Positions 3,809 through 36,308 of a stretch of DNA of 64,000 bases are shown one piece after another. Origin of the DNA: Macrostomum hystrix. Its lineage: Eukaryota > Animalia > Platyhelminthes. The translations under genes and the position numbers were made by a program. The notes beneath the pieces are model-generated. The model saw only the letters and a program-made list of their open reading frames with translations. It had not been told where the DNA came from and did no database searches. Location of the stretch: positions 4,402,001 through 4,466,000 of the forward strand of contig CATNEN010000024.1 of the NCBI GenBank assembly GCA_950097015.1, in the 5' to 3' direction. Position 1 is the stretch's first letter. Each line of letters starts with the position of its first letter.

Positions 3809-4274
3809 ATTTATTAGAAATTAGAAACTGCAGTTTCCCAGTCATACTGATTGTTAGAGCGTCTTCGTGTCCAGACACCTGGCTCATCCTATTGTTTTCA
3901 TGTAACTTGCCTTTTTCAGACGACGTGCCCTAAGTGGCATGAGACACTCACCAGTCACACAAATATCAGCCGTAGAACAATCATTATTTTATTGCTTCAT
4001 TGCTGTTCAGAAAACACTTTAAACTTTTTAATTTAACACCCGCTTTTTAACCGCGGTATACTAATTCCGCAGTCACGCAACCTATTTGAATTGCTCAAAT
4101 TTGGCTCCCATCAATTTCGGAAGTGTTTCACATCCGATCCTCAAGGAGACCAATTGTGTACAGTTTCAATTTAACTTTGCTACCTGTTGTCTGCTATCGA
4201 GTTGCTTGCGATTAATAAATTGCTTTTTGCAAGAATTAAACAGAAACAGTTAATTGTTAAACCTGAATTAATTG

Positions 4275-12600: not shown

Positions 12601-15600
12601 CCCTCCCTCTGTCCACCTCACTCGCCCTCCCTCTGTCCACCTCACTCTCCGTCCCACTCTCCACCTCACTCGCCCTCCCTCTGTCCACCTCACTCGCCCT
12701 CCCTCTGTCCACCTCACTCTCCCTCCCTCTGTCCACCTCACTCGCCCTCCCTCTGTCCACCTCACTCTCCCTCCCTCTGTCCACCTCACTCTCCCTCCCT
12801 CTGTCCACCTCACTCTCCCTCCCTCTGTCCACCTCACTCTCCCTCCCTCTGTCCACCTCACTCTCCCTCCCTCTGTCCACCTCACTCGCCCTCCCTCTGT
12901 CCACCTCACTCTCCCTCCCTCTGTCCACCTCACTCTCCCTCCCTCACTCTCCCTCCCCCTCTCTCCCTCACTCTCCTTTATTGGTTAGAATTAGTAATAC
13001 TTTATTGTGGTTGATATTTCTCTGTGTCTCTCTGATTTTCCATTTGACCATTGTAGACAAAATATATTTCAATGAAAGAACGAATATTAAAATGATTATA
13101 TTATATTTTTATCTTCACAGTCGCAAAGTTTATCAGATAGCCAAGAGATTTTCTACCAGAGTATTTGTTAATATCTAGTCATTATATTAAATTGATTCCA
13201 GGGCACCGAGATAAATAATAATAAAGGAATCTGTATACTACAGTTTAAGCTCGAAATAAAAGTACATTCCATGAAAATCTTAAGAAGGCTTTGTACTTAA
13301 TTTTCACAGAGAGAGCGACAGAGAGAGATTAACTTTATAAATCTAAAAAGTTTGAATCACAATAAACTGATTGTTGCAACAGTGCAGCTTACTAAACTGC
13401 AGTCTCAAGGGCCAATTAACGAAATCTAATCGAGTATATACTCGTAACTTGCGCACATAAACACGCTAAGCATTTATGCAAGCAAGTTTACTCATTACGC
13501 AGAAAGAAGAAAATTACTTTTGCGCAATTCTCTGACGGCCAGTTTTCTGCTGGTTTGCACTTCGATATTTCGAGTCTAATGTAAAGGCTGCAAGTTTCTA
13601 GTCTGTCTTAGCACACACTAAATCCGTCACCATAGCAACCCACTCAAAATTTAAAGTAATAAGCATAAAACATGCGAGGTAAAATGGTTATAAAAATGCT
13701 TCTTTGTGAATTTAAATGTTTAGGACCATTACGGCATCTGGAATTCTTTCGCCTTAAACAGAGAACAGGAATATTTAAGGCTATTTAAGGCAAGCTTGTA
13801 GCCTAGTGGTTAGAGCGTCAGACTAACGACTTGAAGGTCGGGGGTTCGATTCCCAAATCCACTGGAACAATTTGTGCCATTTAGCAAGACACTTAACTCT
13901 GCATTGCTTCAGTTCACCCAGCTCTTAAATTGATACCAGCAACAGCTGACAGTTGGGATAATTGAAGGTGGGTGTGGCGTCCCCCCAGTCCATGGACTGA
14001 ACAGCTGTACACAGCCTTCAGATGCGCCGCACAATAGCTGCGACTGTGCTGTTGGCTGCACATCTGGCCCAAACGGGGCAGGTGTAATCAATTATAATTA
14101 TGTATTATTAAGGCTACGTATAGCTTTTCAGTCCATGGACTGAAACCACCTCAGCTACGCGAATCTTATAAGTGTCTTGCTCAAGGACGAAATTCGTTTC
14201 TGAGATTCAAACTCCCGAGCGAATGCTTAATAAGTTTTTAATATAATCTTAGCGACACCCTACTTCTCCATTGTAATTTTTCCTCGAAATTTCGTTTCAT
14301 GACGAATAGTGTGTTTGCTTTTCACTTATTTACCAGCGGCATCAGGCCTGGCTATGAACACAGGCTAGTCCAAATAAGGAATTGTGAAAGGAATGCGTGC
14401 AGGCTAGCAGTCTTGACCCAATGTACACGGTGTGGCAGAACCCCATTCTATAGCACTGCATCTATTCGAATAGAAAATTTGTGAACAAAAATATGCACGC
14501 TCCTCTAGATGACAATGGGTGGTTAGTCTATGAGGCTTCTTAAAACTATTAGAGTCTTAATTTCATTCTAACGGCCGTGGATTACATTAAAATAAATTCC
14601 CTTCGATAATTCCCAAGCCTGCCTATCAGATCAGTCGGTGTACATTTCATCGCAAGGTAAATTAATGGTCATGAAAGCTATTAATTTGAGAGGCATTCAC
14701 ACAATGGAGGCGTTTTTTACTATATCTGTCTAAAAAACTGCGGATTCAGGACTGCGGATTAATGTGTATATTATTTCTACAATGGATTCAAATCACTTTG
14801 TCTATGACTAAAACTCGTTCGATAACCAACATCTAACCTGATTCTTGTTTAACCTAATTTTGGCCAAACTACAGTTTGGCGTCATTTTTCATTGGCTGTG
14901 ATCAGTCACGTGTTTGGGCTGTGGTCGTGGGGTGGCTAAATAGATTTAAAGCGTTCTAAAAATTGCAACTAACATCGCTATGCTGGGCTAATCAGATTTT
15001 AGCCAGAGCTATAACACAGAATTAAAGCGTACGAAACTGTGCTCCAATGCACTGTGAGAATGTACACTCCCTGACTATGAGAAAGTCAGGGACATGTACA
15101 CAGCAATGTGAGTGTGTCTCGTACAGTATTTGTATCTGTGTGAGTGTGGGCTCAGGAGTGAGCGGAATGGGCAGAACCGCCTCCTGTTGACCTAATAATA
15201 ATGATATTATTAATCCCTAAAATGCATTGCAAGATGAGGGTCTAGCTCCATTAGTTATACATATTCTAGCACTTCTTCACTTGTAATTATAGACGCATTA
15301 GAAAACATAATTAAAAATAATAATTAAGTACTACATTTTCTAGATGACAACACAAAAATATGGTATGTTTCAGTTGCAATAATGTGTATATTGATAAAAT
15401 TGTGTTTAGTAAGTTCGCTAGGGCGCTAATAAGCTATTCTAGTTATATTGGTACACGGTTGCACCTGAGCTGACGGCTGACCTTGTCAATCAGCACTTAC
15501 CAAGTTGGACTTTGCCTGCGGCTGTAATTGTTTTATTAATTGCGCAATTTGTGGATTTGCGATGGATGTTCAGAGAGGCATCGATAAATCATCAGTACAA

Positions 15601-18600
15601 GTACATATATTAGTACAAGCGGGAGTATGCTCAACTCTGATACTTAAAAGCGACATTTCTCAGTCAGTTTATCGCTAAGGAAATCGGTGATCCCAATCAG
15701 GGATGTAAGTCTATCGGTGGCAGCGCTAGCTACAGTTGAGGCAGAATTGATGAATAGTCCCCCCGTGGATGTCCCAACCAGCGGGACAATGATGTTGAGC
15801 AGGCAGTTTTTGCCTAATTACGCATGCAAAGCCCAGGGTTAGACGGAACCCATTACTCTATTTTTAGTAAGCGTCTGGCCAGTCAATTGATTGATTAATT
15901 AACAATAGAACTGTCAGCAATGCTTCTCGAGGTTAACGTGAAATATGTCCTGCCATCGATAGTGCACAAAGACTTGAAAAGTTTGTACTATGGCTGAAAG
16001 ATGCTCTACGAGCTAATTCTGGATTCAAGTCCAGGGCAGAAAATATTTTCGGATTCATTTACAAAGTCGTCCGATCTGCGGATCACCAGGAAACAGAGAA
16101 AATGAATATGCACGCCGTGTATGCGAGCGTAGACTATGGGCGTGAGGTGGGTGTCTAGGACGGACAGAGGTTATAAAATTGAATGTACACTCGTGCGTAC
16201 ATTCCGCTGAAAACTGGTCGTAGCTAATCATCGTTGCGTGTGTGAGGTGGGTGTCAAGGGACGGAAAGAGGTTATAAAATTAAATGTACACTCGTGCGTA
16301 CATTCCGCGAGCTGAAAACTGGTCGTAGCTAATCATCGTAGCGTGAGGTGGGTGTCTAGGAGGGGTAGGAAAGGGAAAAATGACTGTTCAACGAAACCAA
16401 AAAGACAAAATTTTAACGGTCATCGACTCATCGCTAAGGAAGAATTAAATGGATGCCAGTCAATGTCATGAGGTTTTTTATAAATATAAAAATACTTGAT
16501 ATTTTTACAGGCTTTTTAATCATTCCGTAGTAGTATGCAAGAGGGGGCTTCTAGGACAAAAATAATCGCAGCCTCCATTATCCACAAACCATTACTTTTA
16601 TTATTCCCGAAGAGATCAGGAAAAAAAGGGTCCCCGCCCCTCTAAAAACTCCGTCTCCATATTCTAAATTCTCTACTTTTAATATCCCACATCAGTTTGT
16701 AAGTTGAATATCTAGGACAAAAAATTATCGCAGCCTCCTTATTGCACAAACCATTACCTTTCCTGAAGGAACAAGGTTCCCCCGCCAAAAAAAAAATACT
16801 TTCCAGTTTCTGAACTTGGACAAAACAAATTATCGCAGCCACTCCCTAAGAGATCATGCACAAAATAGCGAAGCTGCAAAAAGCGTGCCAAGACAATCAA
16901 ATTAGCACTAAAATCCCAATCAAGACCCCGAACCTAGGGTGCTCATCCTCCGAAAAAAAATTATATTCTCATTAAAAATGCTCCCAATCGTCTCTCCAGG
17001 ATCTTATTACAAAAGTCATGAGCCTAATTACAAGAGTAAGTACCAATGCAAACGAGAATGCAGCGAGTACATGAAGAAATATTGTCCCAACGTCGATATC
17101 AATGTCCCTAATATTAATCTAGCTCTCCAAAGTCACTGGTTTCATAAGTATGGAGCAATTATAAAGGACTACGACAGCTACTATAACTTTGCAGAAATCA
17201 TTAAGCAGCTATAGAACACGCTGCATTAAAATCGATATTTTACGTACGAGCGTTTGATATTTTGCTGTGTGGCGGGTGGATGTTGAGCGGAATGTGTAAG
17301 GCAGCTGTTTCTTGTCTTAGTTCACAGCGCGAGCGGTGTTGGTAGTCACTCCCAGTTGGCTCCACCCCCCCCCCCCCCCCCCAATACGCTCAAACGTGAG
17401 CTCAACGTCAGCTCTTAAAACAAACGTGAGCTCAGCCCGCCCTTTTCGCCGCCTCTTCCTAAAGTTATTTTACACTTCTCAACCGAAACCGTAATAGCTT
17501 CTACTTCATCTATGGATGTCGATTGGTGTATAAACCTGTCTGGCGAAACAGTGCAACGGAGCCTATGTGAGGTCTTATCTGAGACTTTAGCAGAAATCAA
17601 GGATCCAGTTAGAGCTGCGCAGAAACGACAAAAGATCGCCGCATTTTTCAAGCTCAACGAAGAGTCGCTGCAAATGGAAGTCCTCACTCTAACGCGGCTG
17701 CAGAAGAAGGCCGCGAGTGATCGCGTGGCGGCGCTTGATGCAGAGCGGCGAGCTAAGCGCAAAGAAGACTTCAAACAGAAGCTCCTCGCTTCACGAATTC
17801 CCCAAGCAGATGTTGGGAAACCTGCCGATGATGAAAGCGGTGATGTGGTAGAGCGTCTGCAGTGCGCTCTGTTTCGTCTGAGAAGGTCGCAGAAGACTGG
17901 TCTGCATCATGCGATCCAATGTGGAAAACTCTTGTTGACATTTAAAGCCAGTAATAAAAACAGCGGTAAGAAGGCACGAAAGCAGCATTTTGACTACCTT
18001 CTTGATCAAGTAAACCTCAAGGTTTCGTCAGCAAATCTTTATATGAAGTTGTTCAAGCTGGAAAGTGAATACCCTGGTCTTAGGCAAGTCTCCCTGCCGC
18101 TTCGTGATTTGAACACCAATATGTCAATATTAGTTGAAATCCTTGAGGATGATCAGTTATGGAAGCAACTTGTTTGACAATAGGCGCAGAAACTCTAGCC
18201 TGCTTCGGATTGGCCAGAAAAAGTTAACGCGTTGGCTTTTTTTTCCTATTGCAACTTTTTTTAGAAAGCTCTAGTATGCTTCGGATTGGCCAGAAAATGT
18301 TAACGCGTTGGCATTTTTCCCTATTGCAGAACAAAAAAAAAAGAGAAATAGTTGTAGTAAGTGTATTACGTAAAATATTTTTGTGGTATATTGACGCTTC
18401 CTATTAGTCAGAAAAGGCTAATATGCTATTTACCCTATTTCCTGAATAAAGTGACAGACGCAATTAAAAAATCTGCTTTCCTATATCTGAGTAGTATGCA
18501 AGCGGGGGTCACCAGAATTTTTTAAGTGACCATCTTTGATTTAAATTTTGGTAGAAGAATTTCCTCGAAAATTAAATGATGCGCTTCAACATACAAAAAA

Positions 18601-21600
18601 AGTGTTCAAAACAATTCAAATTTATTCTTTGAAGATTCAAATTTATTCTTTGAAGATTCAAATTTATTCTTTGAAGATTCAAACGCATAATTAGGTAGCT
18701 CATTATCTTTGAATCTTCAAACGCATAATTAGGTAGCTCATTATCTTTGAATCTTCAAACGCATAATTAGGTAGCTCATTATCTTTGAATCTTCAAACGC
18801 ATAATTAGGTAGCTCATTATCTTTGAATCTTCAAACGCATAATTAGGTAGCTCATTATCTTTGAAGATTCCAATACGAGTATTCTTAAGCAACAAGAAAA
18901 ATCGGATTCGAACCACAGGCTAAAAGTTTGCAACTGCATGCCAACCACACGCCATACCAACTATGCCAGCGAGCGATCTCTAGCCAGTACGATGGAACTC
19001 CTATTTAGCCTGCAAATGTGTGTTCTGCTCTCTCAACCCCCAGCTCTTTCAGCAGTCTTCCCAGTTCTTTACTTGGCGCATGCAATACAAAGCCCACCCC
19101 ACCAATCCCCAACCCCAACTTTGTCTTACCAAAAATAACAGCTTTAACTAGTTTCCGAGCGATCGATTCCCTCCACCCGCTTGAAGTCCCCATATTGTCT
19201 AGCTTTCTAAGCATTTCTTTGTCCCAGCGAGTCTTCTCCTCTGGAAAATCCCTATACTTAATATCATGCCACATACAGACAGAGTCTAGCTCGTTCACAG
19301 GCTCATGCCCAGGATTTGGATTATTGTTTTTATCTAGCTGTATTTCAAGCGGATTCAAAGGCCCACAATATTTGTAGCCGGGAATTGTCCAGCCTTTGTT
19401 TGGATGAGGAAGCTTTTCTACCAGTCCATGTGAGTCTAAGTTTCCACCAGAGCGTTGCATCATTTTTATAAAAAATTAAATAAAAAATAATGGCAGATCA
19501 GAAACTTCAAAAGCTCTACTACAGTGACAAAGGATTCTTTGTAGGAAAAAATGCAGTCACCAAACTCGCGGAACTAAGTAATGAATCAAAACAAACAGTT
19601 GAAAGATGGCTCTCTAAGCAAGCAGTTTACCAAGTCTATTTCCCACCTGTTAAATTTACAAGACCTCACTTTAACATCTATAAACCTAATGAAGCGCACC
19701 AAGCAGATCTTCTGTTTCTCCCCAATGACTCAGGCTACAAGTATGCGCTCACTGTTATAGACATTGCCTCCAGATATAAGGAAGCGAGACCGCTTAAGAC
19801 TAAGAAGTCAGAAGCAGTTGCAGCTGCCCTCCAAGACATTTACAAAAACTCTCCGCTCACATACCCCCAAACCTTTATGACTGATCCTGGCAAAGAATTC
19901 ATGGGGGCAGTCAAATCCCTTATGGAAAAGAACAATACGAAAATGCGCTACGGAAGAACTGAGCTCCATAGAGACCAGGCTTTTGTTGAAAGATTCAATC
20001 TAACTCTAGCAAAGAGACTTTTCACAAAGCAGACAGCTGAAGAGCTGAAACTAAAAAGTGGCCAATACTATACCAAGTGGACAGAAAGACTCCCCGCAGT
20101 AATAAGTCAACTGAACAATGAAGTATCTCGAATGACAAACCTGAAACCAAATACTGCCATCAAACAAGACACAGTTAAATCAAAACATCCAATCGCCAAT
20201 TTCAACTATCCAAAGCTCCCTGGCGTTTATTCTCCGGAAATTCTTACTAACTCTGAATTCGTTCGCTTCCTTTACTTACCAGGAGAGCTGGAGAAGGACA
20301 CAAAGAGAAGAGCAACAGACCCATACTTTAGTCTTGATGTACATAAGATAAACAGGCATTTCACATCAGCATCCGGTGATTACTATTTTCTATCCCAAGA
20401 CTTTAATTCAAAATCCCCCACACGATCATTCACAAGGGCTGAGCTTCTAGTGATTCCACATGACACAGAAATAAATTAATTTTTTTTTAAATAAAATGAT
20501 TGAAACCAGAACCGTGAATAAAATCAGCAGAATTATCGACTCTAAGAAGCCAGGCGTTGTATCAATTAAAGGTGTCAAAGTCAAAGTAGATCCAATCCAG
20601 CAAATGATCCATTGTAACAATCAAACGCACAATATCACTGATGAGAAGACAGGCGGGATTCTTCCTTTGCTAACTCTTATCCCCATCATCGCAGGTGCTC
20701 TTGGTGCTGCAGGAGGTGTAGCCGGCGGAGTTGCATCAGCTGTGAAGGCTGGCAATGACAGAGCACATCAACAAGAGATGGAGAAAATCGCTAGAGAAAA
20801 AGGAGTCAGAATCGGGGGTAGTTGTGAATCTGATGATGGATCAGCTGATGAATCAGTCAGCAAATCAGAAATCGTTAAAGCCATCATGACACTGCATAAA
20901 GCAGGATTTACAATACTCCGGATGTGAAAACAGAACAGAACAGAATCTGCTCTCATAACTATATTTAGCACTGTTGGTAGTAGTATGCCATACTTTACAC
21001 TTAACTTGAGGGTGACCACCCTAAATTTTTTTTATAAAATTTTCATTAAAAATGCCTAAAGCAAATCCAGAAAAAAAATTTGTCGAATCTTTCTTTCAAA
21101 ATAATTGTCCTCAAGCTCAATCGTTTCAACAAAAAAGTCAAGTCCTGCAAGAGTTTTGCAGGCAGAAATTCCATCAAGATCCAGGCTACCTCGGGAGCTA
21201 TGCAATACAGCAAGAAATTATTAATCAGCTTCTGCATTCAGAGCAGTACACACCAGTGAAGAAGCCGGCGACTGAACACCAACAAAAGAGCCGCAGCTTA
21301 GTCAATAAGTATGAGACACTCACAGGTCAAAATGTGTCGAAATACCCACAGAATAAGCAAGAGCAAGAAGATCTAGAACGTACAATCCACCAGGTTGAAG
21401 CAGAGCTACAAGCAGAAACTGAAGACCTTAAATTTGCACAGAGAAAATTCACAGAGCATTATATTGAGTATACAATCCAGGAAGACACCACAAATTCCCA
21501 ATCCGACATTTACGACTTCAAAGACAGAATTCAATCAGTAATTGATCACACACTGAAGTCACGTAAGACCTTCAAGCTTCAGTTATCATTCAAGATTGAA

Positions 21601-24600
21601 TTTTACATGCCTGCAAAACCCACTGAGCGTCTTGAATACTACATGACTACTAAAGCTCTACCCTTTACTCCCACTGACACACAGGATCCTTTTCTTCAAG
21701 AGATCAGTAAAAAGATTGACGCCTTTACTTCCAGAGGATCAGGTTGGGTTGTCAATGGCATTCAAAAAGCTACAGTAATGATCATGAAATATGACCCTCT
21801 CAAAGCTTCATCATATATTGAGCTCCCGAAAAAGCTAGCGAGTAAAAAAGCTTGCATCAATGTGCAAAATCCTGACCAATGCTGCGCACTATGGGCCGTT
21901 CTGTCTGCAATATTGTATGACAAGGATCGAGCCCACCCAGAGAGAACTTCTCATTATCAAGGTTTGTTCCAGCATAATCATCTCATCTGCCAAGCTAAAG
22001 GAATTTCCTTCAATAGAGGCGGCTTGGCAATCGATCAAATCCCAAAGCTAGAGGAAGTATTTAACAATAAAATCAGAATCACAGTCTTTGAATGGAATGA
22101 GAAGAGCGAAAAAGTACAATTAGTCAGAGCCAGTAAAAACACGCTAGATCCTGAAGGTAGGCGTCGCATAGATGTCGATCTTCTAATCATAGGTGATTTG
22201 CGAGAAAATGCCCACTACGTTTGGATTAAAGATCTTTCCAGGCTCCTCCACAAGCAAATGAACAATCATCATGAATCGGTAGCAATCTGCCGTCTTTGTC
22301 TGAAGCATTATAGTGGACCCGATCGTGATGAAAAACTTAAAGAGCATGAACTGACCTGTGAAGATCATCCAACCAACTGCACACTTCCAACGGATAAGCA
22401 TCTCAGATTTAAGAGTTATCACAAGATGGAGAAGCTCCCGTTTATAGTGTATGCCGACTTCGAATGTACTATAAACCCTGAAACCAATAAGCATGTCCCA
22501 AATTCTGTTGCGTATCTCTTTATTGGAAGAGACTCTTTTATTGACTCAAAGTATTTCTTAGGTGACCAGTGTGTTGAACAATTCATTTACTCGATGATGG
22601 AATTACAGAAAAATGTTGCTGCCATTCAGCCTGTTCCGATAACTATGTCCGATCAAGATGAAATCGACTTCGGATCTGCAACTCATTGTCACATTTGCCG
22701 AAAGCTATTAACACCCTGCGACGTCAAAAACCACACAGTCAGAGATCACGATCACTTCACAGGAAAATTTAGAGGGGCAGCTCATAACACCTGTAATCTG
22801 AAACTTCAGAAAAACATCCGCGACCTTACCATTTTCTTCCATAACGGAAGGGGATATGATTATCACTTATTGGTTGAGAAGCTGGGTATGATACCAGGCA
22901 TTAAACTAGATTGCATCGCAGAGAACAAAGAAAAGTTTAAGTGCATTGATATTAAGCGAGATTCAGGCAAGATTAAGATCAAAGATTCATTCCAGTTTCT
23001 GGCCGCCAGTCTCGATGCTTTGAGTAAAAATCTCACCGATGACCAATGTACTTATACCAAGATGCTGGCAGATTCCCTCAATCCTAGAACCCCAGATTCA
23101 TTTAAGCTTCTTAGAAAGAAAGGTGTCTACCCTTATGAATGTAATCACGTCTTTGCAGAACCACTACCACCCAAGGACAAGTTCTTTTCAAAGCTAACAA
23201 ACTCTGGGATTTCTGATGAAGATTATGAGCATGCTCAGACTGTTTACAAACATTTTAACTGTCGAAACTTTCTTGATTATCACATGCTTTACCTTTGGAC
23301 TGATGTCTTTCTTCTAGCTGATGTATTTGAAACCTTTAGAAAGACCTGGTACTCTGCTTATGGTCTCGACCCCGCTCATTATGTGTCTTTGCCTGCTACC
23401 AGTTGGGAATCATTGCTTAAAATGAAATGGGATCAAAATCCCAACTGGTACATCGAGCTGCTTACAGACATAGACATGTACAACTTTATAGATTCATCTA
23501 AGAGAGGTGGCATCTCTATTTGTGTCCATAGGTATGCAAAGGCGAACAATCCGTATCTAGAAGACTATGATAAAGAAAAGCCTTCAAACTACATCATTTA
23601 TCTGGATGCCAACAACCTCTATGGTTGGGCTATGAGCCAAGATTTACCTGTTAGAGATTTTAGGTGGCTAGATACTTATAAACGCGACTTTTCAATACCT
23701 GCGATCTATGAAGTTGATGTTGAAATCCCTAGGGAACTTCACGACAATTTTTCTGACTTTGCCCCCTTCCCTGAGAACATTAACTGTCCAAAGATAATCC
23801 AGTACAATGATGGAAGCTGGCAGCTATCTGAAAAAGAAAAAGAGCGTGTGAAAAAGTTAACACAAAATCTCATGAACAAGACACGCTACATCATTCATTA
23901 CAAACTGTTGCAGTATTTTATCTCCCTAGGCTGTAGGGTCACGAAAGTTCACAGGGCTCTCGCATTCACAGAAGAAGCGTGGATGAAGCCATACATAGAA
24001 AAAAACACCCAGTTTAGAACTAAAGCAACAAACAGCTTTGACAAGGACCTGTTCAAGCTTGCAAACAACTCTGTCTATGGCAAGACCCTAGAAAACGAAC
24101 GCAACCGCACGAACCTGAAGCTCGTTACCTGTTATGAGCCTGGTACTATTCAGACAAGTTTATCAAAGCCCACTTTCAAAGAGCTTCATATCTTTAATGA
24201 TTACTTGGGTGCCATACTGTTCTATAAGACTAAAGTTACCCTATGCAAGCCCATATTTACAGGTGTGACTGTACTTGACGAATCGAAGCGCCTGATGTAT
24301 AAATTCTTCTATGACATGAAGCGACAATACGGCGAACAAGTGAAACTTCTATATACTGACACAGACTCCCTAATTCTAAACATACAGACTGAGGATGTCT
24401 ATCAGGACATGTTGAATCAAAAACATCTGTATGACCTATCCGAATATCCAGAGTCCTTCAAGACTTTGAAAGGTGATCAAGTACGCGACACTGGAAATCA
24501 AAAAGTTGTAGGAAAAATGAAGGATGAAACGGCTGGCACCCTCATTACAGAGTTTATCGGTTTGAGGGCAAAGTCCTATTTTGTAAAAAGTTGTAAGTCT

Positions 24601-27600
24601 ACCATTAAAAAATCAAAAGGAATCCCAAAACATGTTGTTAAAAACGATCTCCATGAAGCTTCATACAAGGACGCATTGATCAATAATAAAAACACCACCC
24701 ATGAATTTATGAAACTGCAGTCTAAGAACCACAACATTCACACAATTCAACAGAAGAAGATAGGCCTCTCAGGTGCCGATAACAAACGACATATCTTTGA
24801 TGACAACATTACCAGCCTACCATTTGGACACTATAGATTAAATAATTTGTAACAAAATTTGTTACAAAAATTTGTAAAAAAATGACAACCAATATTTATT
24901 TAGAAGAGCTAGCTCAGCAATTAAAAATCCCAAACTTCAGAGGCGTCTTTATGAAGGATACACTGCCAGAAACCCCACTAGAAAAAGAATGTGGAATCAT
25001 GAACTTTGACCCTGCAGAAAAGCCAGGTTCTCATTGGGTTTGTTGGGTAATTGATCCGAACCGTAAACACAAGTACTATTACTTTGATAGCTATGGAACT
25101 GCTGTACCCGAACAACTGAGAAATTATATGACTCATATGAGACATAAAATATACCGCTCAGATTTTATACTCCAGGGTATTAACAGTGATATTTGTGGTG
25201 AGCTATGTATGACTGTTTTGTATGCAATGACCCACACCCGAAAGAGTTACAAAGAAATCATTTTAGGGATGAAAAAATAATTTTTTTAGGTCCCGTTAGG
25301 TCCTGTTAGGTCTTGTTCATTTTCGCTGCTTTCGCCACATGCTGTTTGAACACATTCTCCAGATCATTTCTTAGCTGGCTCATTTCATCAATGGTATTTA
25401 GATTAAGCCTAACTCGTTGCTCATAGAGGTCTTGAATGTTTTTAAACTCATCCTCTGAAATGAACTTGTCTTCAATCGCCTTTGAGATGTACCCGATGAT
25501 AGAGCTTTGTACTGATTTCTCATTTGTTTGCTTCGCATGTAGATGCTTTAGCTTTTGTCGTCTGTTCCGTGATAGTGCTCCTGTAACTGCTGAAATCAGA
25601 CCACATGTGGCACCAGCAGCTCCGAGTGGAATGGCGATTGGCACAGTGATTACTGGAATTGTTGAAACAGCAGCTGCTGATCCCGATAGAACAGATACAG
25701 ATCCAAGAAGCATATTAAGGTAATCGAAGACCTTGCACTCTCTATTATAGCGCTTCAGTTTCTTGGTATTATGATCAATTTGCCGTTTAATATCATCTCG
25801 CATCTTTTGAATCTCCACCAATCTGAATTGCTGCGAGTTACAAGTGAAAGTTGGGTAAAGGGGTTGTTGTGGGCTTGGGTTGTTTGGAGGCGCACTAGGT
25901 TCATATAGAGAGTTAATTTTTTCAGACATTTATTGAACGAAAAAAAATTATATAAATTTTTTATGACCTTTCTCGCAAATCTGTTGCACGCCTTGCCGCC
26001 TCCCTTGATACCTCTTCTGATGGTCCATCAGATACTCTTGCTTCTTCAATGTCAATGTCCGGCAGATTGTGCAGTCTCTCTAGTCGGCCGAGTCTTCTTT
26101 TCGTTTTCCCCCAGTCGTTGTATATCCTATTCAAATACTCAGTGTGTCTTGTTACGTTTAGCCCCATGGGTCTTAGTGTTTCCTTTGTTTCATTTGCTAG
26201 TCTCTGAAGAGTTGTTATATCTGACTCTGCTGCTGTGAGTCGCGAACTCAATCTATCATGCACAGTGCTTGATCTTAGCATAAAGGCTTCTAAATTTCGA
26301 ACTTTATTTGAATTTTCTGTTACTCTTTCTTCCACCAAGTTTGCTCGATTATTAACGGCAGTTCTCAGAGTGGCGATGTCTAATCTTAGAGTGGCGATGT
26401 CTGATCTCAGAGTGGGTATCGCTGCAACAAGAGTATCCCGATCATGAACAAACTGTACATATAGTATGTCAATCTCTTCCTTCCGCTTTGCTATGCTCAC
26501 CCGTAGGTCTTCCATGTTTATTTGTCGTTGGTGTGTTGCCCGCTCTAGGGCTTTCAAGCGATCTTTAATGAGTTTGATTTCTGGAATTTTTTCGTCAACA
26601 TTTATATAACGCCTGTCAAGGTAAGAAACTTGAGCACTAGTGAGTGTGCTTCCGCGATCCAACGATTCACCTGCAAAATTAATAGACATTTTTTTAATAA
26701 CAAAATTTAAATTACAGTTCTTTTTTCTTTGTTGATCATCACAAACTGGTAAGGTTGATTCCACTTGTCATAGCAAAGATTAACGAATTCCTCCTGTGAA
26801 ATCTTTCTGTTGGAGTTTTTTGTTGGATTTACAAAATTGGCAGGCGCAATGACCTCATTGTAAAATCTTTTTAGCCTGTCCTGTGGAATTGTTGGAAACA
26901 GGAGGATCAGATTGCAGTTCCCACGAATTGTTTTGTTCGGGAGCTCGAACCAGTTCTGGGCAATGTAAATTACGTTACAATTGTTGTGCCGTCCTCTTGT
27001 AAAATAGTTTTCTATCTGCTTCTGTGGGCCTGTCATGCAATCATCAAAGACAATCAAATGTTTTCTCCCCTTTTCTAGCTCATCTGGTTGGGGTAGAAGT
27101 TTGGTCTTAGGATCAACCTGCGGATCTCCGTATGTGAACACTTTAATGTTCTGCCATTTTTCATTGTCTTTGATGTACTTTGCATATTCGGCAGCTACAA
27201 TTTCTGGGTTACTGGGAAGGCTCTTTTGGTTATTAAAACATTGAATAATGTGCTCTTTGTGCAGTCTGTTTTGCAGTCCAGAGATCAACATTTTATACTC
27301 ATCTTGATACAGGGTGGGAGAGTAGATGTGCAGAGTGTCATAGTCGATAAAGCCAGGTCTAAGAAGCATGTTAAAGACTCTGAATGTTTTACCTGAACCT
27401 GACGAACCAACAACAATGCATCTGAAGTGACTCGGGATTGACTCATGATGAGAAAACTTAATCTGATTACGTGTCCAGTGAGGATTGAAGTCGTTTGAAA
27501 AGTCCATTTTTCTATGATGAAAAAAAAATTAAAAAAGAGTAAATCATTTATAAGATGTGTCTAGGACTTAGATGTGTCTAGGACTTAGATGTGTCTTTTT

Positions 27601-30600
27601 GGGACTTAGATGTGTCTAGGACTTAGATGTGTCTATTTGGGACTTAGATGTGTCTTTTTGGGACTAGTCTTGTACCCTTACATGTCTTGTACCCTCGGAA
27701 AGTACCCTAGTACCCTATTCGAATTTGAAACCACTTCCTTTTTTAATGCTAGCTCTCATCTTCTCATAGATTGCAGGGTCCACAGTGTCTGGGTTTGGGG
27801 CCAGAGGAGCCAGCGGAGCCAGCGGAGCCAGCGGAGCCAATGGGGGCTGAATATCTTGTGTTACAGTATCCTTTATCTTTTTAGCCGCAGTGACAACACT
27901 TCCCACAGATTCAGCCACGTTCTTAATATTATCTTTGTTCTCACTAATGACTTTAAAGATCTGAGCACCCTGTGCAATCATGTCAGCAAGACCATTCCCT
28001 GAGCGTTCTTTCCTAGGATAGTGACCTGCTGGGAAAAGTCCAGATCCACGCTTAATTAGATTAAGTTCCTCCTTGTCATAGTATTTGTCCACGTCTTTTT
28101 CGAAAATAATCGGCATTTTTTATTAGGGAAGAAATTATTTTTTGTTAAAACGTGAAAGCAGAAGCTCTCTTGCCCGTTTGTCGATATACTTCTTTTCCAT
28201 CATTTTGTCCAGGATGTTGACAAATTCTTTTCTATTTTCGTCTTTCATGCCAGTCTTTGCAGCTCCAAGAAGAACGGCCACTCGCTTATAGATGTCAGAA
28301 ATTCCTTTTCCTTGAAATGATTGGTCAGTGGAGGACTGGTCGGTGGAGGACTGGGGTGAACTCTCAACTGGTCTTTGTTGTGGTGTGAACACTCTTGCCT
28401 TGATTTTATTCATTCGAGCTGGGGAGAAATTTTCTAGTTGTTGCCAGGCATCCGGGTGATCATTTTTATATTTAGCTACTTGAGTCGGATCTGCATTTTC
28501 AAGGGCACTGAGTACGTCTTCGGGTGTTGATTCAGATGTTTGTTGCTGCTGTGGCGGTTGCTGCTGGGGCGGTTGCTGCTGGGGCGGTTGCTGTTCTAGA
28601 TGTTTTATGGCATCTTCTTGATCTGGCAAACCAAACCATTGTTTAAAATGCTTGTACTTTTTGAATCTAGTCAGGATGACACCGTTGTCATGCATCATTT
28701 TCAGAATTTGTGGGGCCTTTAGTATTTCTATATCTCTTGCAAGAGCAAAACTCACAAGATCTCTATAGTTCTTTAGCTGCTTGTCCGAAATTTTCTCTTG
28801 GTTCTTAGTCATAAAATTCAGTAAGGTTTCTGTGTAAATTATTCTCTTAGTTTCTGAGCCTTTGACAACAGAAATATGGTTCTTGTTTATGTCGATATAA
28901 TATTCCACTGGTTCATTATAAATGTTTTTTCTCCACATGCTTATTCCAAATACATATTTCCCATCATGTTCTGCGCGTTCTACTGGTCCAAAAAAGTTAT
29001 CTGTCACTTTTAGTTGTGACTGTTGTGGGACTTGGACTTGTGGATCTGCAGATTGCTGTATCTGCGGTGCTTCTGGAATTTTGTCCAAAGCCTTTTGCAC
29101 CTGGGTTTCCTGTATGTCGTCAATAGTTTCTTTGACTTGATCAATATTTTTCTTAGCTTCTCCATACCCGGGTTTATGAAACTCTGTGGCTGCTTGGACA
29201 AACTCATTGTAGGATTGTTGCTCCTTATTGATTAGCCCGGTAACTCTCTTTTCTGCTTGTGCTAGCTTCTCCAATTCAGATATTTGGTGCGCATTTTTTC
29301 GCTTCATTTTTATTTTATTTTTTTTAGTTTAAAAAAATGAACGACCCACTGACACCAGTTTTCTACAAAATTAACAAGCCTATTTTGAGTGATGATAGCA
29401 CAATCAAAGCGACTCAAGTAAGAGTTCCCAGTCAGGAAAATCAGAATGAAACTAATCTTGGTCCTGGTCAAACACTGACATTCACCTACAATGGATGTTC
29501 GTCTCTGGTTAGTGTGCACAGTCTTAAGAGCGGCTTCCATATGACATTTCAATTCAAGACAAAGGGAGGTGCGGATGCAGCTCATGCTAACGTTGACAAG
29601 CATGATGCAGATGTGGCTCTGATTAGTAACTTTTGGGCGTACATGTTCAAGGAGTTTAGTGTATCGAATGGGAGCACAGAGTTGGAGCGAATCGCCAACT
29701 TTGGAATTGTCTATGACGCTCATTGTTTGATCGAGAATCCAGATTTTATTCAGTTGGGGAGTGGTGCAGGTTTTATTGCAGATGAAAAAGAAGGAGATAT
29801 CAATGACAGTGGCTATAAAAAGAGGAAGAAGAGATACAACTATGCATTGCAAGGTGCTGATGATGCTGCCAAGAACCCGCTGTATCGGTCTGTTGATGTA
29901 TTCATACCACTGAGATTCATGAGTGGATTCTGTAATACATTTAATCGACTGACTAGTAATTTCAGCTACACCTTTAAGATGACTAGAGATGATCGCAGTA
30001 GAGTGTTGTGGACTGGGGCGGACCACACTAGGATGGAAGTGAAGCTAACCGGAATCGAGCTGTATTTGGAAGTCATTGAGCCAAAGACCGCACTAAAAGC
30101 AGATTATCTCAAGGCAATAGAGAAGGACATTGATGTCGCCTACACGGCCTACATGTGTCGAGATGAGCGAAACGAAACCAGAACAAACATCTGCATTAAA
30201 GAGGGATCATGCAGCAATCCTAGGTATATTATTATTAACATGAGAAACCCAAATAACATTATACGCTACATGCATGGAGACGTGCGGTCCATTCAGCATG
30301 AAATCAGTGATAATCTTTACCCCGCACTGCCACAAAATGGAAATTTCAGTCAGAACAAGATTAGCAAATTTTACAGCGAGTTGGTCGACTTGGCTGTGAA
30401 AGAGAACAATGGAATTGCTATCACTGCTCTTCAATATGGAACTCTTTATCCGATGTTTGGCGCTGATGTGTCTGCCAGACAAATGCCTACTGATAACAGC
30501 CCTGTGAATATCGTGACTAACATTGAGAGGACTGCCGCAACTGCTGTTGACCTGTACATTATCTATGCGTTCGAGAGGAAGGTGAAGCTTAACATGATCA

Positions 30601-33600
30601 ACAATTCATCCAGTAAAGTTTAAATATTTTTTTTCGGGGCTGAAAAATGGAAGCGATTGCTGAAAGACTAAATAATATTATTTCTCACTCTAAGGAGAGC
30701 ATTCCTATTACAATAGCTGGGCGAATTAATGACTCAAACGGGATATTTGTTGAAAAATTAGAGCAGGCGATTCATCTGGATCCAGGTGCTAATTACCATG
30801 TATATCTTAACGACTTCACTGGTTGGTCAAACGTTCCCAATGTGACAGCAGCAAATAATAAGTTTCATTACAAATGGAGAGGTGCAGCAGCAGAAGCTGT
30901 GGTATTCCCTGTGAGCACGCAAAGTGTGGATACCTACAATTACTTTCTAGAAAGTGTTTTTACTAAAAGAGGCCATTTTGAAACACCCAATGAGAGCAAG
31001 CCAGAGAAGAAACTGTTCCCTGTCAAACTATCCTATGATCTCACTGTAATGAGAGTGGTCATGCAAGTTCACAAAGATGCTGAGGTTGAATTTAAAGATG
31101 ACACATGGTATAGGGAATTGGGATTCGAGAAGAAAGTTTATAAGGCGGAAGCACAGACTGCATCACCGGAGGCAGTTTCAAGGACCCTGCTAAGCGGCTT
31201 GTTCTTAGCACCCAATATCGCAGACATTGTAAAGGGTTTGAATATACTAATCAGAAGTAATCTCAGTCGTGATTGGGTGTTTAAGGGAAAGCGAACGAAT
31301 ATTTTGTACAACATCTCAAACTCTGTTGCTGGAGGACAGATGCTGGTAGAGAAACCAAATCCAGTGAAAAGAGTTGTGCTAAGTAATAAGGAGATTCACG
31401 AGATTGTGCTGCAGTTTGAGACGGAAGATGGTGTTGGCGTTGATTTCAACGGTGAAGAGTTTGTATTGACGTTGATCATTGAGAGAATGTAAGCTGCTTA
31501 ATGATTTCTGCAAAGTTATAGTAGCTGTCGTAGTCCTTTATAATTGCTCCATACTTATGAAACCAGTGACTTTGGAGAGCTAGATTAATATTAGGGACAT
31601 TGATATCGACGTTGGGACAATATTTCTTCATGTACTCGCTGCATTCTCGTTTGCATTGGTACTTACTCTTGTAATTAGGCTCATGACTTTTGTAATAAGA
31701 TCCTGGAGAGACGATTGGGAGCATTTTTAATGAGAATATAATTTTTTTTCGGAGGATGAGCACCCTAGGTTCGGGGTCTTGATTGGGATTTTAGTGCTAA
31801 TTTGATTGTCTTGGCACGCTTTTTGCAGCTTCGCTATTTTGTGCATGATCTCTTAGGGAGTGGCTGCGATAATTTGTTTTGTCCAAGTTCAGAAACTGGA
31901 AAGTATTTTTTTTTTGGCGGGGGAACCTTGTTCCTTCAGGAAAGGTAATGGTTTGTGCAATAAGGAGGCTGCGATAATTTTTTGTCCTAGATATTCAACT
32001 TACAAACTGATGTGGGATATTAAAAGTAGAGAATTTAGAATATGGAGACGGAGTTTTTAGAGGGGCGGGGACCCTTTTTTTCCTGATCTCTTCGGGAATA
32101 ATAAAAGTAATGGTTTGTGGATAATGGAGGCTGCGATTATTTTTGTCCTAGAAGCCCCCTCTTGCATACTACTTTCCGTTAACAAAAGCTATTGCTATGA
32201 TATTTAGAAAGGCCAGAGACATACTTTAGGAGCGTTTAAATCTTTGAATCGCCAAGAAAGCATGAACTTATTGAGAATATAATACTGGTACTTACATTCT
32301 CCTCTTCCGCGCCGGAGAAGCGGTGCATAATCTGCTCAGAGATGGAGTGCATGAGCAGGATCCAGCCGAGGTTCATGTAGCGCATGATGCTCAGGCGCAG
32401 CCGGCGGGCCACCTCGAAGGTGCTCTTCGTGCCAGTCAGGATGCCGTAGGAGAAGAATGAGATGCGGTTTAGCCAAGGGATGTTGAGGTACATCTGCCAC
32501 CATCGCCCGATCACGCCTGCGGGTTGTGAATGGAAAGTGCGTTGTAGAGAGAGAGAGAGAGAGTACATCTAGCCCAGCTGAGCCTGAAGTTCAACCAGTG
32601 GCGCAGCCGCAGCTAATACTAATAGTAATAGTAATAATAATAAGTGCCGAAGGGCTGCGGGCAGTGGCACATCATTTGGTGACACTAGACCCGCAGCCAG
32701 CGAGGAGGCAATTCTGCCTATTTCGCTGACTCCTGAGCACACACGCACACAGATACTGTACGCAGGCACACGCTCACACAGGTGTGTACATCTGCCCTGA
32801 CTTTCTCATCGTCAGGCAGTTCGCACTCTCACTGCGCCTTGGAGGTTGGCCCTCAAAGGCGTAAACTGCACGACAAGCCCCCAAGCCTTCTCTCCGCGGC
32901 TGCGCCCCAAATAAATGTGGCCTCGCCGTGGAATCGAACTTAGGGACCGTGGTGCGAGAGGCAAACGAGTTAACCGCTTAATATTTTTTCTGATACGTTC
33001 GTTGCTGAAGTGAGATTAATTAAGATGATTTTCAAGCATATAGTTTGCCTCGTTACAACTGATGGAAAATGTCTGAGTCCCAAAAATGTTTTCTAATTTT
33101 GACTGCACAATATTGGGGTACTGCAGGTAACTAAAATTTGCTAATTATTTTCTAAATTGACAGGTGTCTCAGCTTGCCCGTCTAGATTGACAGGTGTATC
33201 AGATTGCCTGTCTAGATTGACAGGTACGTGAGATTGCCTGTCCAGATTGACAGGTCAGCTTGCCCGTCTAGATTGACAGGTGTCAGATTGCCCGTCTAGA
33301 TTGACAGGTGTCAGATAGCCCGTCTAGATTGACAGGTGTCAGATAGCCCGTCTAAATTGACAGGTGTCAGATTGCCCGTCTAGATTGACAGGTGTATCAG
33401 CTTGCCCGTCTAGATTGACAGGTGCGTGAGATTGCCTGTCCAGATTGACAGGTCAGCTTGCCCGTCTAGATTGACAGGTGTCAGATAGCCCGTCTAGATT
33501 GACAGGTGTCAGATAGCCCGTCTAAATTGACAGGTGTCAGATTGCCCGTCTAGATTGACAGGTGTATCAGCTTGCCCGTCTAGATTGACAGGTGCGTGAG

Positions 33601-36308
33601 ATTGCCTGTCCAGATTGACAGGTCAGCTTGCCCGTCTAGATTGACAGGTGTCAGATTGCCCGTCTAGATTGACAGGTGTCAGATTGCCCGTCTAAATTGA
33701 CAGGTGTCAGATTGCCCGTCTAGATTGAGAGGTGTCAGATTTCCCGTCTAGATTGACAGGTGTATCAGATTGACTGTCTAGATTGACAGGTGCGTGAGAT
33801 TGCCTGTCCAGATTGACAGGTCAGCTTGCCCGTCTAGATTGACAGGTGTCAGATTGCCCGTCTAGATTGACAGGTGTCAGATAGCCCGTCTAGATTGACA
33901 GGTGTCAGATTGCCTGTCTAGATTGACAGGTATATCAGATTGCCCGTCTAGATTGACAGGTGTCAGATTGCCAGTCCAGATTGATAGGTGTCAGATTGCC
34001 CGTCTAGATTGGCAGGTGTCAGGTGGCAGGTGGGACCTTGGCGCGAGAGGCACGCTCTGCCACCGACCCCCAGCCGCAGTTATCACTTGACGCTTCCAAA
34101 GGTCGTGTACAGCTGTTCAGTCCATGGACTGGGGAGGCTGCCAGGCCCACCAGAATTTTTATCCCACGCTGGCACTCAGTTAGGAAGGCTGAATCATTAG
34201 GAAACGTTGTGCCTTGCTCAAAGACACCAAATTCTTTGATTGGGCTGCGAATCGAACTCCCGACCTCTGGGTCAAAAGTCCAAAGCTCTAACCACCATGG
34301 AGCTTGAGTTAGTTTATTTGTATCTAAAAATATGTGCAATGAAAGGTGCTTGACGTAATTCTTCATTGACCATTTGCATATAGTGATCAAATGCGATTAA
34401 GTGACGCAGAAACTGCCGATCCTATGGTCTTTAGTACAACAGTCTGCCACTCAAGCAAGCGGAACAAATGGAGATGTAGAGGGACAAAGCCTGGCTTTTG
34501 TTTTCTCTGAAATTCCCGAGAAGGAGGCCGGCCTATTCAAGACTTTTTCATCTGAAAACTGTACAATAACACAGGGGAATGGAGAATGAGAAGCATTAGT
34601 GCGTGAGCTGCAGTGTTGGGGGTGGGGACCAGAAGCTTGTTGGAGTTAGTGGGACTGGAGGGCCGCAGTTCAGCACGAGAGGGGGTTGGCGCGTTTCAAC
34701 GCATGCCAAATGTGACTCGTCATCAATTTTGAATGGCGAGAGCCAAGATGGGATAGTCACGCGGGTAGCTTGGGTGGGGTGGGGGCGGTGGGCACGGATT
34801 TGGTAGGCCGGTCTGGTTTTCCTCTGGAGTCAAGGAGCAGCTCTTGAATAGCTGGCACAGTTGCCAGCTGTCAGCTGGGTGACTGCGCCAAGTGCAGTCG
34901 GGCATCGGGCATCGCGTGCCTAACAGCGCTTCAACCGATGGGAGAGAAAGTGAATGAGCCAAGGTGTCTGCCAATCAGTAGTCCAGTCCTAATTTCCAAA
35001 CTCTAAATCATTCACGAGCGTATTATCTAAATCCCATGTCAGGGACATACTCTCAGGCTAGCAATGATGTCACTTACAAAGTCAGTTGATTCGCATGAGG
35101 CTTAATGCTTAGACCACTCAGATTCAATCGAGCCTTCCACCGAATCAACTCTGCTAAAACCTGCCCGTGTAGTACAGTCTACCCAATGCAGTCTACTCAA
35201 TGCAGTCTACCCAATGCAGTCTACTCAATGCAGTCTACCCAATGCAGTCTACTCAATGCAGTCTACTCAATGCAGTCTACCCAAAACAGTCTACCCAATG
35301 CAGTCTACCCAATCCAGTCTACCCAATCCAGTCTACCCAATGCTGTCTACCCAATCCATTCCACCCAATATTTATAGTCTACCCAATTCAGTCTACCCAA
35401 TGCAGTCTCCCCAATCCAGTCTACCCAATGCTGTCTACCCAATCCAGTCTACCCAATCCAGTCTACCCAATGCTGTCTACCCAATGCTGTCTACCCAATG
35501 CTGTCTACCCAATGCTGTCTACCCAATCCAGTCTACCCAATGCTGTCTACCCAATCCATTCCACCCAATATTTATAGTCTACCCAATCCAGTCTACCCAA
35601 TCCAGTCTACCCAATCCAGTCTACCCAATCCATTCCTCCCAATATTTATAGTCTACCCAATCCAGTCTAACCAATCCAGTCTACCCAATCCAGTCTACCC
35701 AATGCTGTCTATCCAATGCTGTCTACCCAATCCAGTCTACCCAATCCAGTCTACCCAATCCAGTCTACCCAATCCAGTCTACCCAATCCAGTCTACCCAA
35801 TCCAGTCTACCCAATCCAGTCTACCCAATGCTGTCTACCCAGTCTGTCCCAAAGGTTTCAACAGCCGCGGCCTGAGCCTCACCAGCCACGAAGAATCCCA
35901 GAATGAAGGACAGCGGGATGCCCTTGTCCATCTGTCCGCAGAATATCACAACCAATTCAAAGGTGTGCCGAGAGCTGGGTGACAATAGAAATCGGTAGCA
36001 GAGGCTGATGGCCGCATAGGCCGACAGATAGACCAGCAGCTCGCTGTACAACAGCCGGTAGATGCTGCCGCGCCACATTGCTAACAGCTTCAGGAAGACG
36101 CATCTCGTATTAGTTGATACAATCCTGGCGTAGGAGCCTGGCACTGCCATGTTGCCTTGCCCAGGCTGCAGGTGCGAAACTGGTTTAGAAGAGCTAAGCC
36201 TGGCAAAGTCTTGTACGCGCAAGAAATAAGGGACCTGTCCGCATGCGCTGTGTTTATCTTTCAGCCAACCTCTCTACCTGCTTTCGGCGGGACAACCACT
36301 GAGCGAGA

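Follow-up and report, generated by a model that had tools for sequence, protein, structure and literature searches.

A probable full-length and young Maverick/Polinton provirus in a bestrophin intron of Macrostomum hystrix

Introduction

Most genomic copies of Mavericks and adintoviruses are decayed. The locus described here raises the question of whether a copy in an animal genome is complete and young, and whether it might still be competent. It lies within a stretch of 64,000 nucleotides from Macrostomum hystrix (contig CATNEN010000024.1, positions 4,402,001 to 4,466,000; hereafter the window), for which the original prediction had proposed an intact and very recently integrated element of a possibly undescribed lineage. 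[quoted passage not shown] The Alpha-type adintoviruses were described by Starrett et al. 2021 (PMC8502044), who for the barley-midge element also described the positions of read ends with respect to the TIR termini, and Alphadintovirus is a genus in Eupolintoviridae (NCBI taxonomy). The analysis presented here indicates that the window very probably contains a full-length and young Maverick/Polinton provirus, which is inserted into an intron of an animal bestrophin gene.

Results

Boundaries of the element

The element is of the adintovirus type of Maverick/Polinton and measures 15.6 kb. Its ends and non-coding repeats are as follows.

16523–16528, no strand: left TSD, TTCCGT, identical to 32174–32179
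16529–17210, plus strand: left TIR, 682 nt, begins AGTAGT (self-comparison)
18188–18865, no strand: three tandem-repeat arrays with periods of 76, 21 and 38 in a non-coding stretch
31492–32173, minus strand: right TIR, 682 nt, ends ACTACT (self-comparison)
32174–32179, no strand: right TSD, TTCCGT, identical to the left copy

The perfect TSD of the original prediction was recovered with 6/6 matching positions, for which the probability by chance is 1 in 4096, and its length of 6 bp is of the kind made by rve-type integrases. The proposed identity of two TIRs of equal length was borne out as well, as a base-by-base alignment of the arms gave 682/682 complementary positions (100%) with 0 mismatches. 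The complementarity ends sharply at 682 nt, since only 6 of the 20 following bases match. The predicted AG...CT ends belong to longer termini of the form (AGT)2//(ACT)2, and the left TIR contains two 42-nt direct repeats (16558–16599 and 16720–16761). In the flanks of the element within the window, neither a second copy nor a solo TIR or fragment that might point to a local rearrangement was detected. A search of the whole window against Rfam gave no match. The observed/expected CpG ratio is 0.64 in the element versus 0.78–0.85 in unique parts of the host sequence, a difference from which residence time is not clearly readable.

The host locus

The regions on both sides of the element carry parts of one bestrophin gene on the minus strand.

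32296–32516, minus strand: nearest bestrophin exon on the upstream side of the insertion (positions 89–154 of the Pfam profile)
10214–10606, minus strand: open frame containing the bestrophin exon that follows beyond the element (positions 144–239 of the Pfam profile)
9660–9857 and 9411–9653: further bestrophin exon pieces

The upstream exon is followed by a canonical splice donor GT at 32295–32294, at a distance of 116 nt to the TSD. Left of the element, no bestrophin exon was present in the 30 open frames tested first, and the exons lay further out. The presence of consecutive bestrophin exons to the left and right of the element identifies the host as an animal and shows the integration to be real. 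The host introns and the animal genes ruled out an origin of the sequence from a prokaryote or a phage. Assemblies are known to include adintovirus-like contigs that stem from contaminating organisms (PMC8502044), and the flanks are rich in minisatellites, which are hard to assemble. Nevertheless, a free viral genome or contaminant misjoined to host sequence is highly improbable and such a chimera was rejected, because a perfect 6-bp TSD sits at the exact TIR ends and the two junctions are situated in unique sequence within an intron of one gene, the exons of which follow in order on either side. An exon of rabenosyn-5 was observed near the element.

Gene content and gene order

The element encodes 13 open reading frames (ORFs), which occupy 88% of its unique part and contain no stops or frameshifts. 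The integrase, polymerase, protease, ATPase, MCP and mCP genes, all described as unbroken in the original prediction, each consist of one uninterrupted ORF, and the same applies to the seven further ORFs. MCP, mCP and the polymerase are full length relative to their relatives, and the integrase, protease and ATPase were compared at the level of their domains. The order of the genes is PLA2, integrase, pX, PolB, protease, followed by three ORFs flanking the ATPase and by the MCP-mCP pair. Those involved in integration, replication, maturation, packaging or putatively in entry are listed below.

19005–19463, minus strand: phospholipase A2 (PLA2), 152 aa, parvovirus-VP1u-type domain (Pfam PF08398, 9.3e-14, profile positions 1–78 of 80)
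19490–20479, plus strand: integrase, 329 aa, rve core (Pfam PF00665, 2.2e-9, over cutoff)
20496–20927, plus strand: adenovirus protein-X-like (pX-like) ORF, 143 aa (Pfam PF05829, 1.3e-5, 25.5 bits versus a cutoff of 25)
21052–24852, plus strand: protein-primed DNA polymerase (PolB), 1266 aa, with an Endonuclease-VII-like insert (Pfam, homologues)
24882–25280, plus strand: adenain-like cysteine protease, 132 aa (Pfam PF00770, 5.2e-5, over cutoff)
26707–27507, minus strand: packaging ATPase, 266 aa, A32/FtsK-like (Pfam PF04665, 1.7e-6, over cutoff)

The integrase aligns to the core of foamy-virus integrase, with the second Asp and the Glu among the aligned residues, and its start is 26 nt from the start of the PLA2 gene on the opposite strand. 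The two entry-type genes of the original prediction, PLA2 and pX, were both recovered in the Pfam searches. The calcium loop and the His-Asp dyad of PLA2 align to AAV VP1 chains, and the pX-like ORF contains a hydrophobic Gly/Ala-rich segment. The protease is unusually short; its His51 and Asp69 align with His54 and Glu71 of adenain (1avp), and the region of the nucleophilic Cys lies outside every alignment. Residues 14–237 of the ATPase match PHROG 2666 (terminase large subunit; 2.3e-8), and a sequence search of the ATPase against solved structures gave nothing useful.

The polymerase

Pfam assigned the exonuclease piece of PolB (22450–23100) to PF02945 (27.8 bits) and PF03175 (26.2 bits), both over cutoff, and the majority of its 2035 homologues carry PF03175. 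The closest relatives are 47–48% identical and are unnamed environmental or assembly proteins. PolB of the element retains 162 of the 192 columns that are invariant among 78 relatives, including conserved Asp, Glu, Lys and Tyr positions and a Cys/His cluster; 11 of the 30 differing columns show conservative exchanges. These 78 relatives form one tight clade with a median identity of 71% among each other and 39% to PolB of the element. The N-terminal 520 aa gave no match in relaxed-threshold Pfam and PHROGs searches, and a sequence search of PolB against solved structures gave nothing useful. Since no family match was obtained for the OTU-like part, the presence of an OTU/terminal-protein part is postulated from the literature (PMC11161782, PMC8502044); a conserved Cys and a conserved His are present in the expected N-terminal region.

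The capsid proteins

Two adjacent genes encode proteins with the folds of viral capsid components.

29337–30623, plus strand: major capsid protein (MCP), 428 aa, double jelly roll (DJR; fold match, relatives)
30647–31492, plus strand: minor capsid (penton) protein (mCP), 281 aa (fold match, relatives)

The MCP reached 21.5 bits against Pfam PF21738, which is under the cutoff of 27, and its relatives (422–438 aa) carry this domain. An AF2 model of the MCP (pLDDT 53, low) matched exclusively DJR capsid proteins in the PDB, among them those of PBCV-1, Sputnik, SGIV and mavirus, with E-values down to 6e-11 and a probability of 1.0, despite TM-scores of only 0.3–0.4. A BFVD search with the same model likewise retrieved DJR capsid proteins only, again with a probability of 1.0. 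The closest MCP relatives are 78% identical and represent unnamed environmental or assembly proteins; relatives at 71–78% identity are present in several datasets from ENA, JGI and Logan that are independent of each other, and the best 20 MCP clusters that were looked up are all unnamed. For the mCP, the stop codon of which adjoins the right TIR, 12 relatives with 54–65% identity were found; most of the full-length ones measure 269–280 aa and one 332 aa. The top PDB matches of its AF2 model (pLDDT 66) are the mavirus penton, the adenovirus penton base and the Sputnik penton (E 7e-6, probability 1.0). Sequence searches of MCP and mCP against solved structures gave nothing useful.

Accessory ORFs

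The remaining five ORFs were not assigned a function by relaxed-threshold Pfam and PHROGs searches.

17512–18177, plus strand: u221, 221 aa, accessory region (no Pfam or PHROG match)
25306–25929, minus strand: u207, 207 aa (no family match)
25961–26689, minus strand: coiled-coil ORF, 242 aa from the first ATG (sub-threshold coiled-coil matches only)
27715–28116, minus strand: u133, 133 aa, short peptide repeat (no family match)
28135–29307, minus strand: u390, 390 aa, Gln/Pro-rich repeats (no family match)

The central hydrophobic Gly/Ala-rich segment of u207 weakly resembles that of the pX-like ORF (E 0.004, single comparison), and u390 and the MCP gene, which lie on opposite strands, have their starts 29 nt apart. 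The coiled-coil ORF, which is listed as 25961–26764 when counted from a GTG, is the sole candidate for the fibre-like gene of the original prediction, and its sub-threshold matches do not sustain that description.

Discussion

Classification of the element

The genes and ends described above comprise what characterises Mavericks/Polintons (Polintoviricetes), namely an rve integrase, a PolB of the PF03175 class, a DJR MCP with a single-jelly-roll penton protein, an FtsK/A32-type ATPase and an adenain/Ulp1-type protease (with its Cys region outside the alignments), together with long TIRs, a 6-bp TSD, a size within 15–20 kb and ends composed of repeated trinucleotides. The MCP, penton, ATPase and protease genes amount to a complete set for morphogenesis. 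The animal host and a PolB of the Alpha (PF03175) class suggest an Alpha-type adintovirus/Maverick, a known kind of which the element would be a new member.

The element resembles Alpha adintoviruses in its animal host, in a PolB of the PF03175 class that carries a long extension at its N-terminus, and in its rve integrase, its ATPase of the FtsK/A32 type and its adenain-like protease. Hexon-like DJR and penton proteins are further common features, as are a parvovirus-like PLA2 and a membrane-active function of the pX-like type. In Alpha adintoviruses, the latter two reside in one PLA2X protein of the virion module, a PLA2 with a C-terminal pX-like domain, whereas the element encodes them as two ORFs on opposite strands, flanking the integrase. 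Named adintovirus proteins were not among the sequence-level matches. The intact vertebrate Mavericks share the 6-bp TSD, the (AGT)2//(ACT)2 ends and the intronless ORFs, and the sizes of the element (15.6 kb) and of its TIRs (682 nt) fall within their ranges of 12.7–24.6 kb and 46–1447 nt, respectively (PMC8097293). Their genes, which include PZ, PW and PM, are arranged in two conserved modules, pPolB-ATPase-PZ and INT-mCP-PW-MCP-PRO, an order from which that of the element differs (PMC8097293), and the nearest named vertebrate PolB match, from a snake, is about 44% identical. The part of the original prediction that concerned an undescribed lineage is plausible, considering identities of 78% for the MCP and 47–48% for PolB to close relatives that are all unnamed, but the kind itself is already documented.

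Mavirus-type virophages likewise possess an rve integrase, a protein-primed PolB and TIRs, and they provide some of the closest structural matches to the penton and the MCP. However, structural alignments show only about 10% identity, sequence-level matches are absent, and the element has an animal host with no sign of a giant-virus helper. An identity as virophage or Polinton-like virus was rejected, given a likeness at the fold level only and the animal nature of the neighbouring host genes. Adenoviruses share the penton-base and hexon-type folds, the adenain-type protease, the protein-X-like peptide, inverted terminal repeats and a predicted protein-primed replication. In contrast to them, the element has an integrase and a TSD, less than half the genome size and far smaller capsid proteins (428 and 281 aa).

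Putative life cycle, age and competence

By analogy with adenoviruses, tectiviruses and Mavericks, PolB may use the terminal-protein part at its N-terminus as a primer at the repeated AGT ends, and the jumping back involved would keep the two TIRs identical in each round. The (AGT)2//(ACT)2 motif of vertebrate Mavericks has been tied to such jumping-back priming (PMC8097293). The ATPase would then package a linear copy into a capsid built from trimers of the MCP and pentons of the mCP. Maturation of this capsid would fall to the protease. PLA2 and the pX-like peptide could help in membrane crossing at entry, and the integrase would insert the linear DNA by a 6-bp staggered cut.

The absence of any difference between the 682-nt TIRs together with the 13 open ORFs suggests that the insertion is young, which agrees with the very recent integration of the original prediction. 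Judged from its sequence, it may be roughly younger than 0.2–2.2 My, depending on the mutation rate of the host. Gene conversion between TIRs is a process by which an element could seem younger than its real age. The copy may well be still competent, for which we give about an even chance.

The strongest alternative, which we regard as somewhat unlikely, is a very young fossil, a copy with intact frames that has become incompetent by host silencing, missense changes, regulatory loss or a missing accessory function. Silencing of Maverick-type elements by the host is well known. Moreover, 96% of the vertebrate Maverick loci are degraded (PMC8097293), and both the short protease and the 30 of 192 PolB columns that deviate from the best-sampled clade would fit such a loss. 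As the 78 relatives represent a single tight clade, these 30 differences are as expected of a separate lineage, and the retained acidic, basic and Cys/His positions of PolB, the 13/13 open ORFs and the identical TIRs argue against incompetence.

An older insertion, the TIRs of which were homogenised by gene conversion and the ORFs of which were kept open by selection, for instance after co-option by the host, appears improbable. Long inverted repeats within one molecule can convert each other, and an element in the intron of a gene would be inherited along with it, but co-option is not expected to preserve all of the 13 ORFs along with the TSD and the two TIRs, and no precedent for it was found in PMC8502044 or PMC8097293.

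Significance

Beyond a young and full-length provirus, it may be speculated that the element is the integrated form of a still-circulating lineage of animal viruses, the capsid module of which is otherwise encountered only in unnamed contigs from environmental samples and sequencing runs. The separate PLA2 and pX-like ORFs and the compact protease of 132 aa would be further traits of this lineage. We consider this rather doubtful; if true, the element would serve as the reference genome of a group of adintoviruses at the level of a genus that is as yet undescribed. With its perfect ends, open genes and unambiguous host junctions, it is a good annotation reference for a poorly sampled lineage, and through it about 500 unnamed clusters of capsid proteins in public data acquire a name. 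Lying 116 nt from a bestrophin splice donor, the element is also a natural example of a large insertion of viral origin with a possible effect on a host gene. Furthermore, the locus is well suited to addressing, from population and expression data alone, the current activity of such elements in animals.

Termini and age of the insertion

The element, a Maverick/Polinton provirus of the adintovirus type (16529-32173), is bounded by one pair of long inverted arms at 16529-17210 and 31492-32173, which were 682 nt long and 100% complementary in an inverted-repeat search. The original prediction had claimed equal and identical terminal inverted repeats (TIRs) of 682 bp, and a base-by-base alignment confirmed this with 0 mismatches in 682 nt. 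Beyond the inner TIR edge complementarity is lost, with matches at 6 of the following 20 positions. The termini read AGTAGT at the start and ACTACT at the end. The perfect 6-bp target-site duplication (TSD) that had been predicted was likewise recovered, as TTCCGT lies directly outside both TIRs (16523-16528 and 32174-32179); a 6/6 match is expected by chance once in 4096. The predicted interval of 16523-32179 therefore comprises the element plus both TSD copies. Each TIR also contains two 42-nt direct repeats that are 86% identical and 162 nt apart (16558-16599 and 16720-16761 in the left arm, with counterparts in the right), as well as a weaker 23-nt repeat pair. Both repeat types could be protein-binding sites.

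Protein-primed replication, as established for adenovirus-like replication, holds the two terminal repeats identical. Consequently, TIR differences accumulate only after integration, and 0 differences in 682 positions correspond to 95% upper age bounds of 2.2, 0.9, 0.4 or 0.2 My at rates of 1, 2.5, 5 or 10 × 1e-9 substitutions per site per year, respectively. A second estimate, independent of the TIRs, comes from the open reading frames (ORFs), which total 12.6 kb and in which a stop would arise from about 4.6% of single-base changes. Assuming one indel per ten substitutions, the probability that every one of the 13 ORFs is still open falls to 5% after 0.4-1.8 My.

Gene content

The 13 ORFs (132-1266 aa) each begin with ATG, contain neither stops nor frameshifts and occupy 88% of the inter-TIR sequence.

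Assigned genes of the element (window position, strand, gene, basis)
19005-19463, minus, PLA2, Pfam PF08398 (9e-14, 78/80 model positions)
19490-20479, plus, integrase, rve core over cutoff
20496-20927, plus, adenovirus-protein-X-like (pX-like) ORF, PF05829 just over cutoff
21052-24852, plus, protein-primed polymerase (PolB), 1266 aa
24882-25280, plus, protease, PF00770 over cutoff
26707-27507, minus, packaging ATPase, PF04665 over cutoff and PHROG terminase large subunit (2e-8, residues 14-237)
29337-30623, plus, major capsid protein (MCP), relatives with PF21738 and modelled double-jelly-roll (DJR) fold
30647-31492, plus, minor capsid (penton) protein (mCP), relatives 54-65% identical and modelled penton fold

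In tool alignments, read by residue number, PLA2 aligns with AAV VP1 chains at the calcium loop and His-Asp dyad, the integrase with that of foamy virus at its second Asp and the Glu, and the protease with adenain at His51 and Asp69 (His54 and Glu71 in adenain). Searches of Pfam and PHROG returned no function for a 242-aa coiled-coil ORF or for four ORFs named by their length in amino acids (u221, u207, u133 and u390). The coiled-coil ORF is the sole candidate for the predicted fibre-like gene, a reading that family matches did not confirm. A hydrophobic Gly/Ala-rich segment of u207 (25306-25929, minus) weakly resembles one in the pX-like ORF (34% over 44 aa, E 0.004 in a single comparison). 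The likeness may mean that u207, too, is membrane-active, or it may reflect composition alone. Short peptide repeats were found inside u133 and u390, and tandem-repeat arrays occupy the two largest non-coding gaps of the element (18188-18865 and 27553-27665). In the divergent gene pairs PLA2/integrase and u390/MCP the start codons are 26 and 29 nt apart (19464-19489 and 29308-29336), which leaves almost no space for separate promoters.

Polymerase

With the whole PolB as query, Endonuclease_7 was the only Pfam family reached, just under the cutoff. Searched in pieces, residues 467-683 matched both Endonuclease_7 (27.8 bits) and DNA_pol_B_2 (26.2 bits) over the cutoff. A protein search recovered 2035 homologues, most with PF03175 and many also with PF02945; the best was 47-48% identical in the polymerase part, and named matches came from a sea slug, a snake and a sponge (~43-44% identity). 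The 78 aligned full-length relatives form a tight clade with a median identity of 71% to each other and 39% to the PolB of the element, which retains 162 of the 192 columns invariant in that clade. Among the retained columns are the Cys/His cluster of the endonuclease-like insert and, throughout the exonuclease and polymerase parts, the conserved Asp, Glu, Lys and Tyr positions; of the 30 columns that differ, 11 are conservative changes. The exonuclease part accommodates the Endonuclease-VII-like Cys/His module at 22651-22827 (residues ~534-592). Many relatives have the pairing of PF02945 with PF03175 in their precomputed annotation, so the module characterises the family rather than this element in particular. 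Polinton PolBs are known to carry homing-endonuclease inserts plus an N-terminal terminal-protein and OTU-like part (PMC11161782, PMC8502044). As the N-terminal 520 aa had no family match in Pfam or PHROG, we can only infer the latter part here.

Capsid proteins

A word-indexed search identified nine MCP relatives, the best 78% identical. The full-length ones measure 422-438 aa and all carry PF21738, which indicates that the 428-aa MCP is full length. When 1.84 billion representatives were searched with a profile, 498 clusters reached E<=1e-3, 156 reached 1e-10 and 23 reached 1e-30. The best 20 clusters were all unnamed ENA, JGI or Logan proteins, with 0/20 in NCBI/UniRef; by this measure the capsid lineage is 'dark' in databases. 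For the mCP, 12 relatives were found, most of the full-length ones 269-280 aa and one 332 aa long. The contigs that carry relatives of the capsid lineage mostly measure 1.5-15 kb, with a single one of 7.3 Mb. One MCP relative and one penton relative each come from a 3702-nt contig, probably the same one.

The AlphaFold model of the MCP is weak (pLDDT 53), yet its structural matches were exclusively DJR capsid proteins, namely those of PBCV-1, Sputnik, SGIV, mavirus, PM2 and PRD1 (E down to 6e-11); a comparison with BFVD likewise returned DJR capsid proteins exclusively. The mCP model (pLDDT 66) matched the mavirus penton, adenovirus penton bases and the Sputnik penton with prob 1.0. With TM-scores of ~0.3 for both models, these are fold assignments and not close likenesses.

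Host locus

The element is spanned by a bestrophin gene on the minus strand. Its five exon pieces, searched separately and unjoined, are all open and follow one another in profile order, together spanning positions 4-323 of the Pfam profile.

Host exons (window position, strand, assignment)
35824-36222, minus, bestrophin, profile 4-87
32296-32516, minus, bestrophin, profile 89-154, adjoining the element
10214-10606, minus, bestrophin, profile 144-239, on the far side of the element
9660-9857, minus, bestrophin, profile 238-280
9411-9653, minus, bestrophin, profile 275-323
46552-47313, minus, rabenosyn-5, large open frame with Rab-binding domain PF11464 (1.6e-10)

The adjoining exon has an AG acceptor and a GTAAGT donor from 32295, and the right TSD lies 116 nt into the intron, counted from this donor. 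The element makes up ~15.65 kb of the ~21.7-kb intron. In an alignment with chicken BEST1, roughly 50-60% of residues are common to it and the first exon piece, and rabenosyn-5 is a second animal-type gene upstream of bestrophin. The host of the element is an animal; a human origin of the contig was rejected, as its proteins are distant from their human counterparts. The flanks (1-16400 and 33150-64000) show an unusual density of unrelated minisatellite arrays with periods of 14-46 nt, and many of these arrays extend over 0.3-1.5 kb. Between 60459 and the end of the window there are ~180 copies of a 20-nt unit, with very strong GC skew.

Proposed life cycle and placement

Building on the observed gene parts, TSD and end motif, we propose a route from replication to integration. 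Protein-primed initiation would involve jumping back at the doubled AGT. The ATPase would package the DNA into an MCP/penton shell, which the protease would mature, and PLA2 and the pX-like peptide may aid membrane penetration. The rve enzyme would then integrate the element with a 6-bp stagger.

Every defining Maverick/Polinton feature that could be examined is present. By the criteria of PMC8502044 the element classes as Alpha-type adintovirus-like, in that it resides in an animal and combines a PF03175 PolB with a virion module that includes PLA2. It differs from the Alpha-type adintoviruses described there in having PLA2 and pX on two distinct ORFs, and from vertebrate Mavericks in lacking their conserved gene order (PMC8097293). 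Mavericks that are intact, with TIRs and 6-bp TSDs, have been described before, 134 of them in 17 vertebrate species (PMC8097293). The element adds to the known Mavericks/Polintons a member of a thinly sampled lineage.
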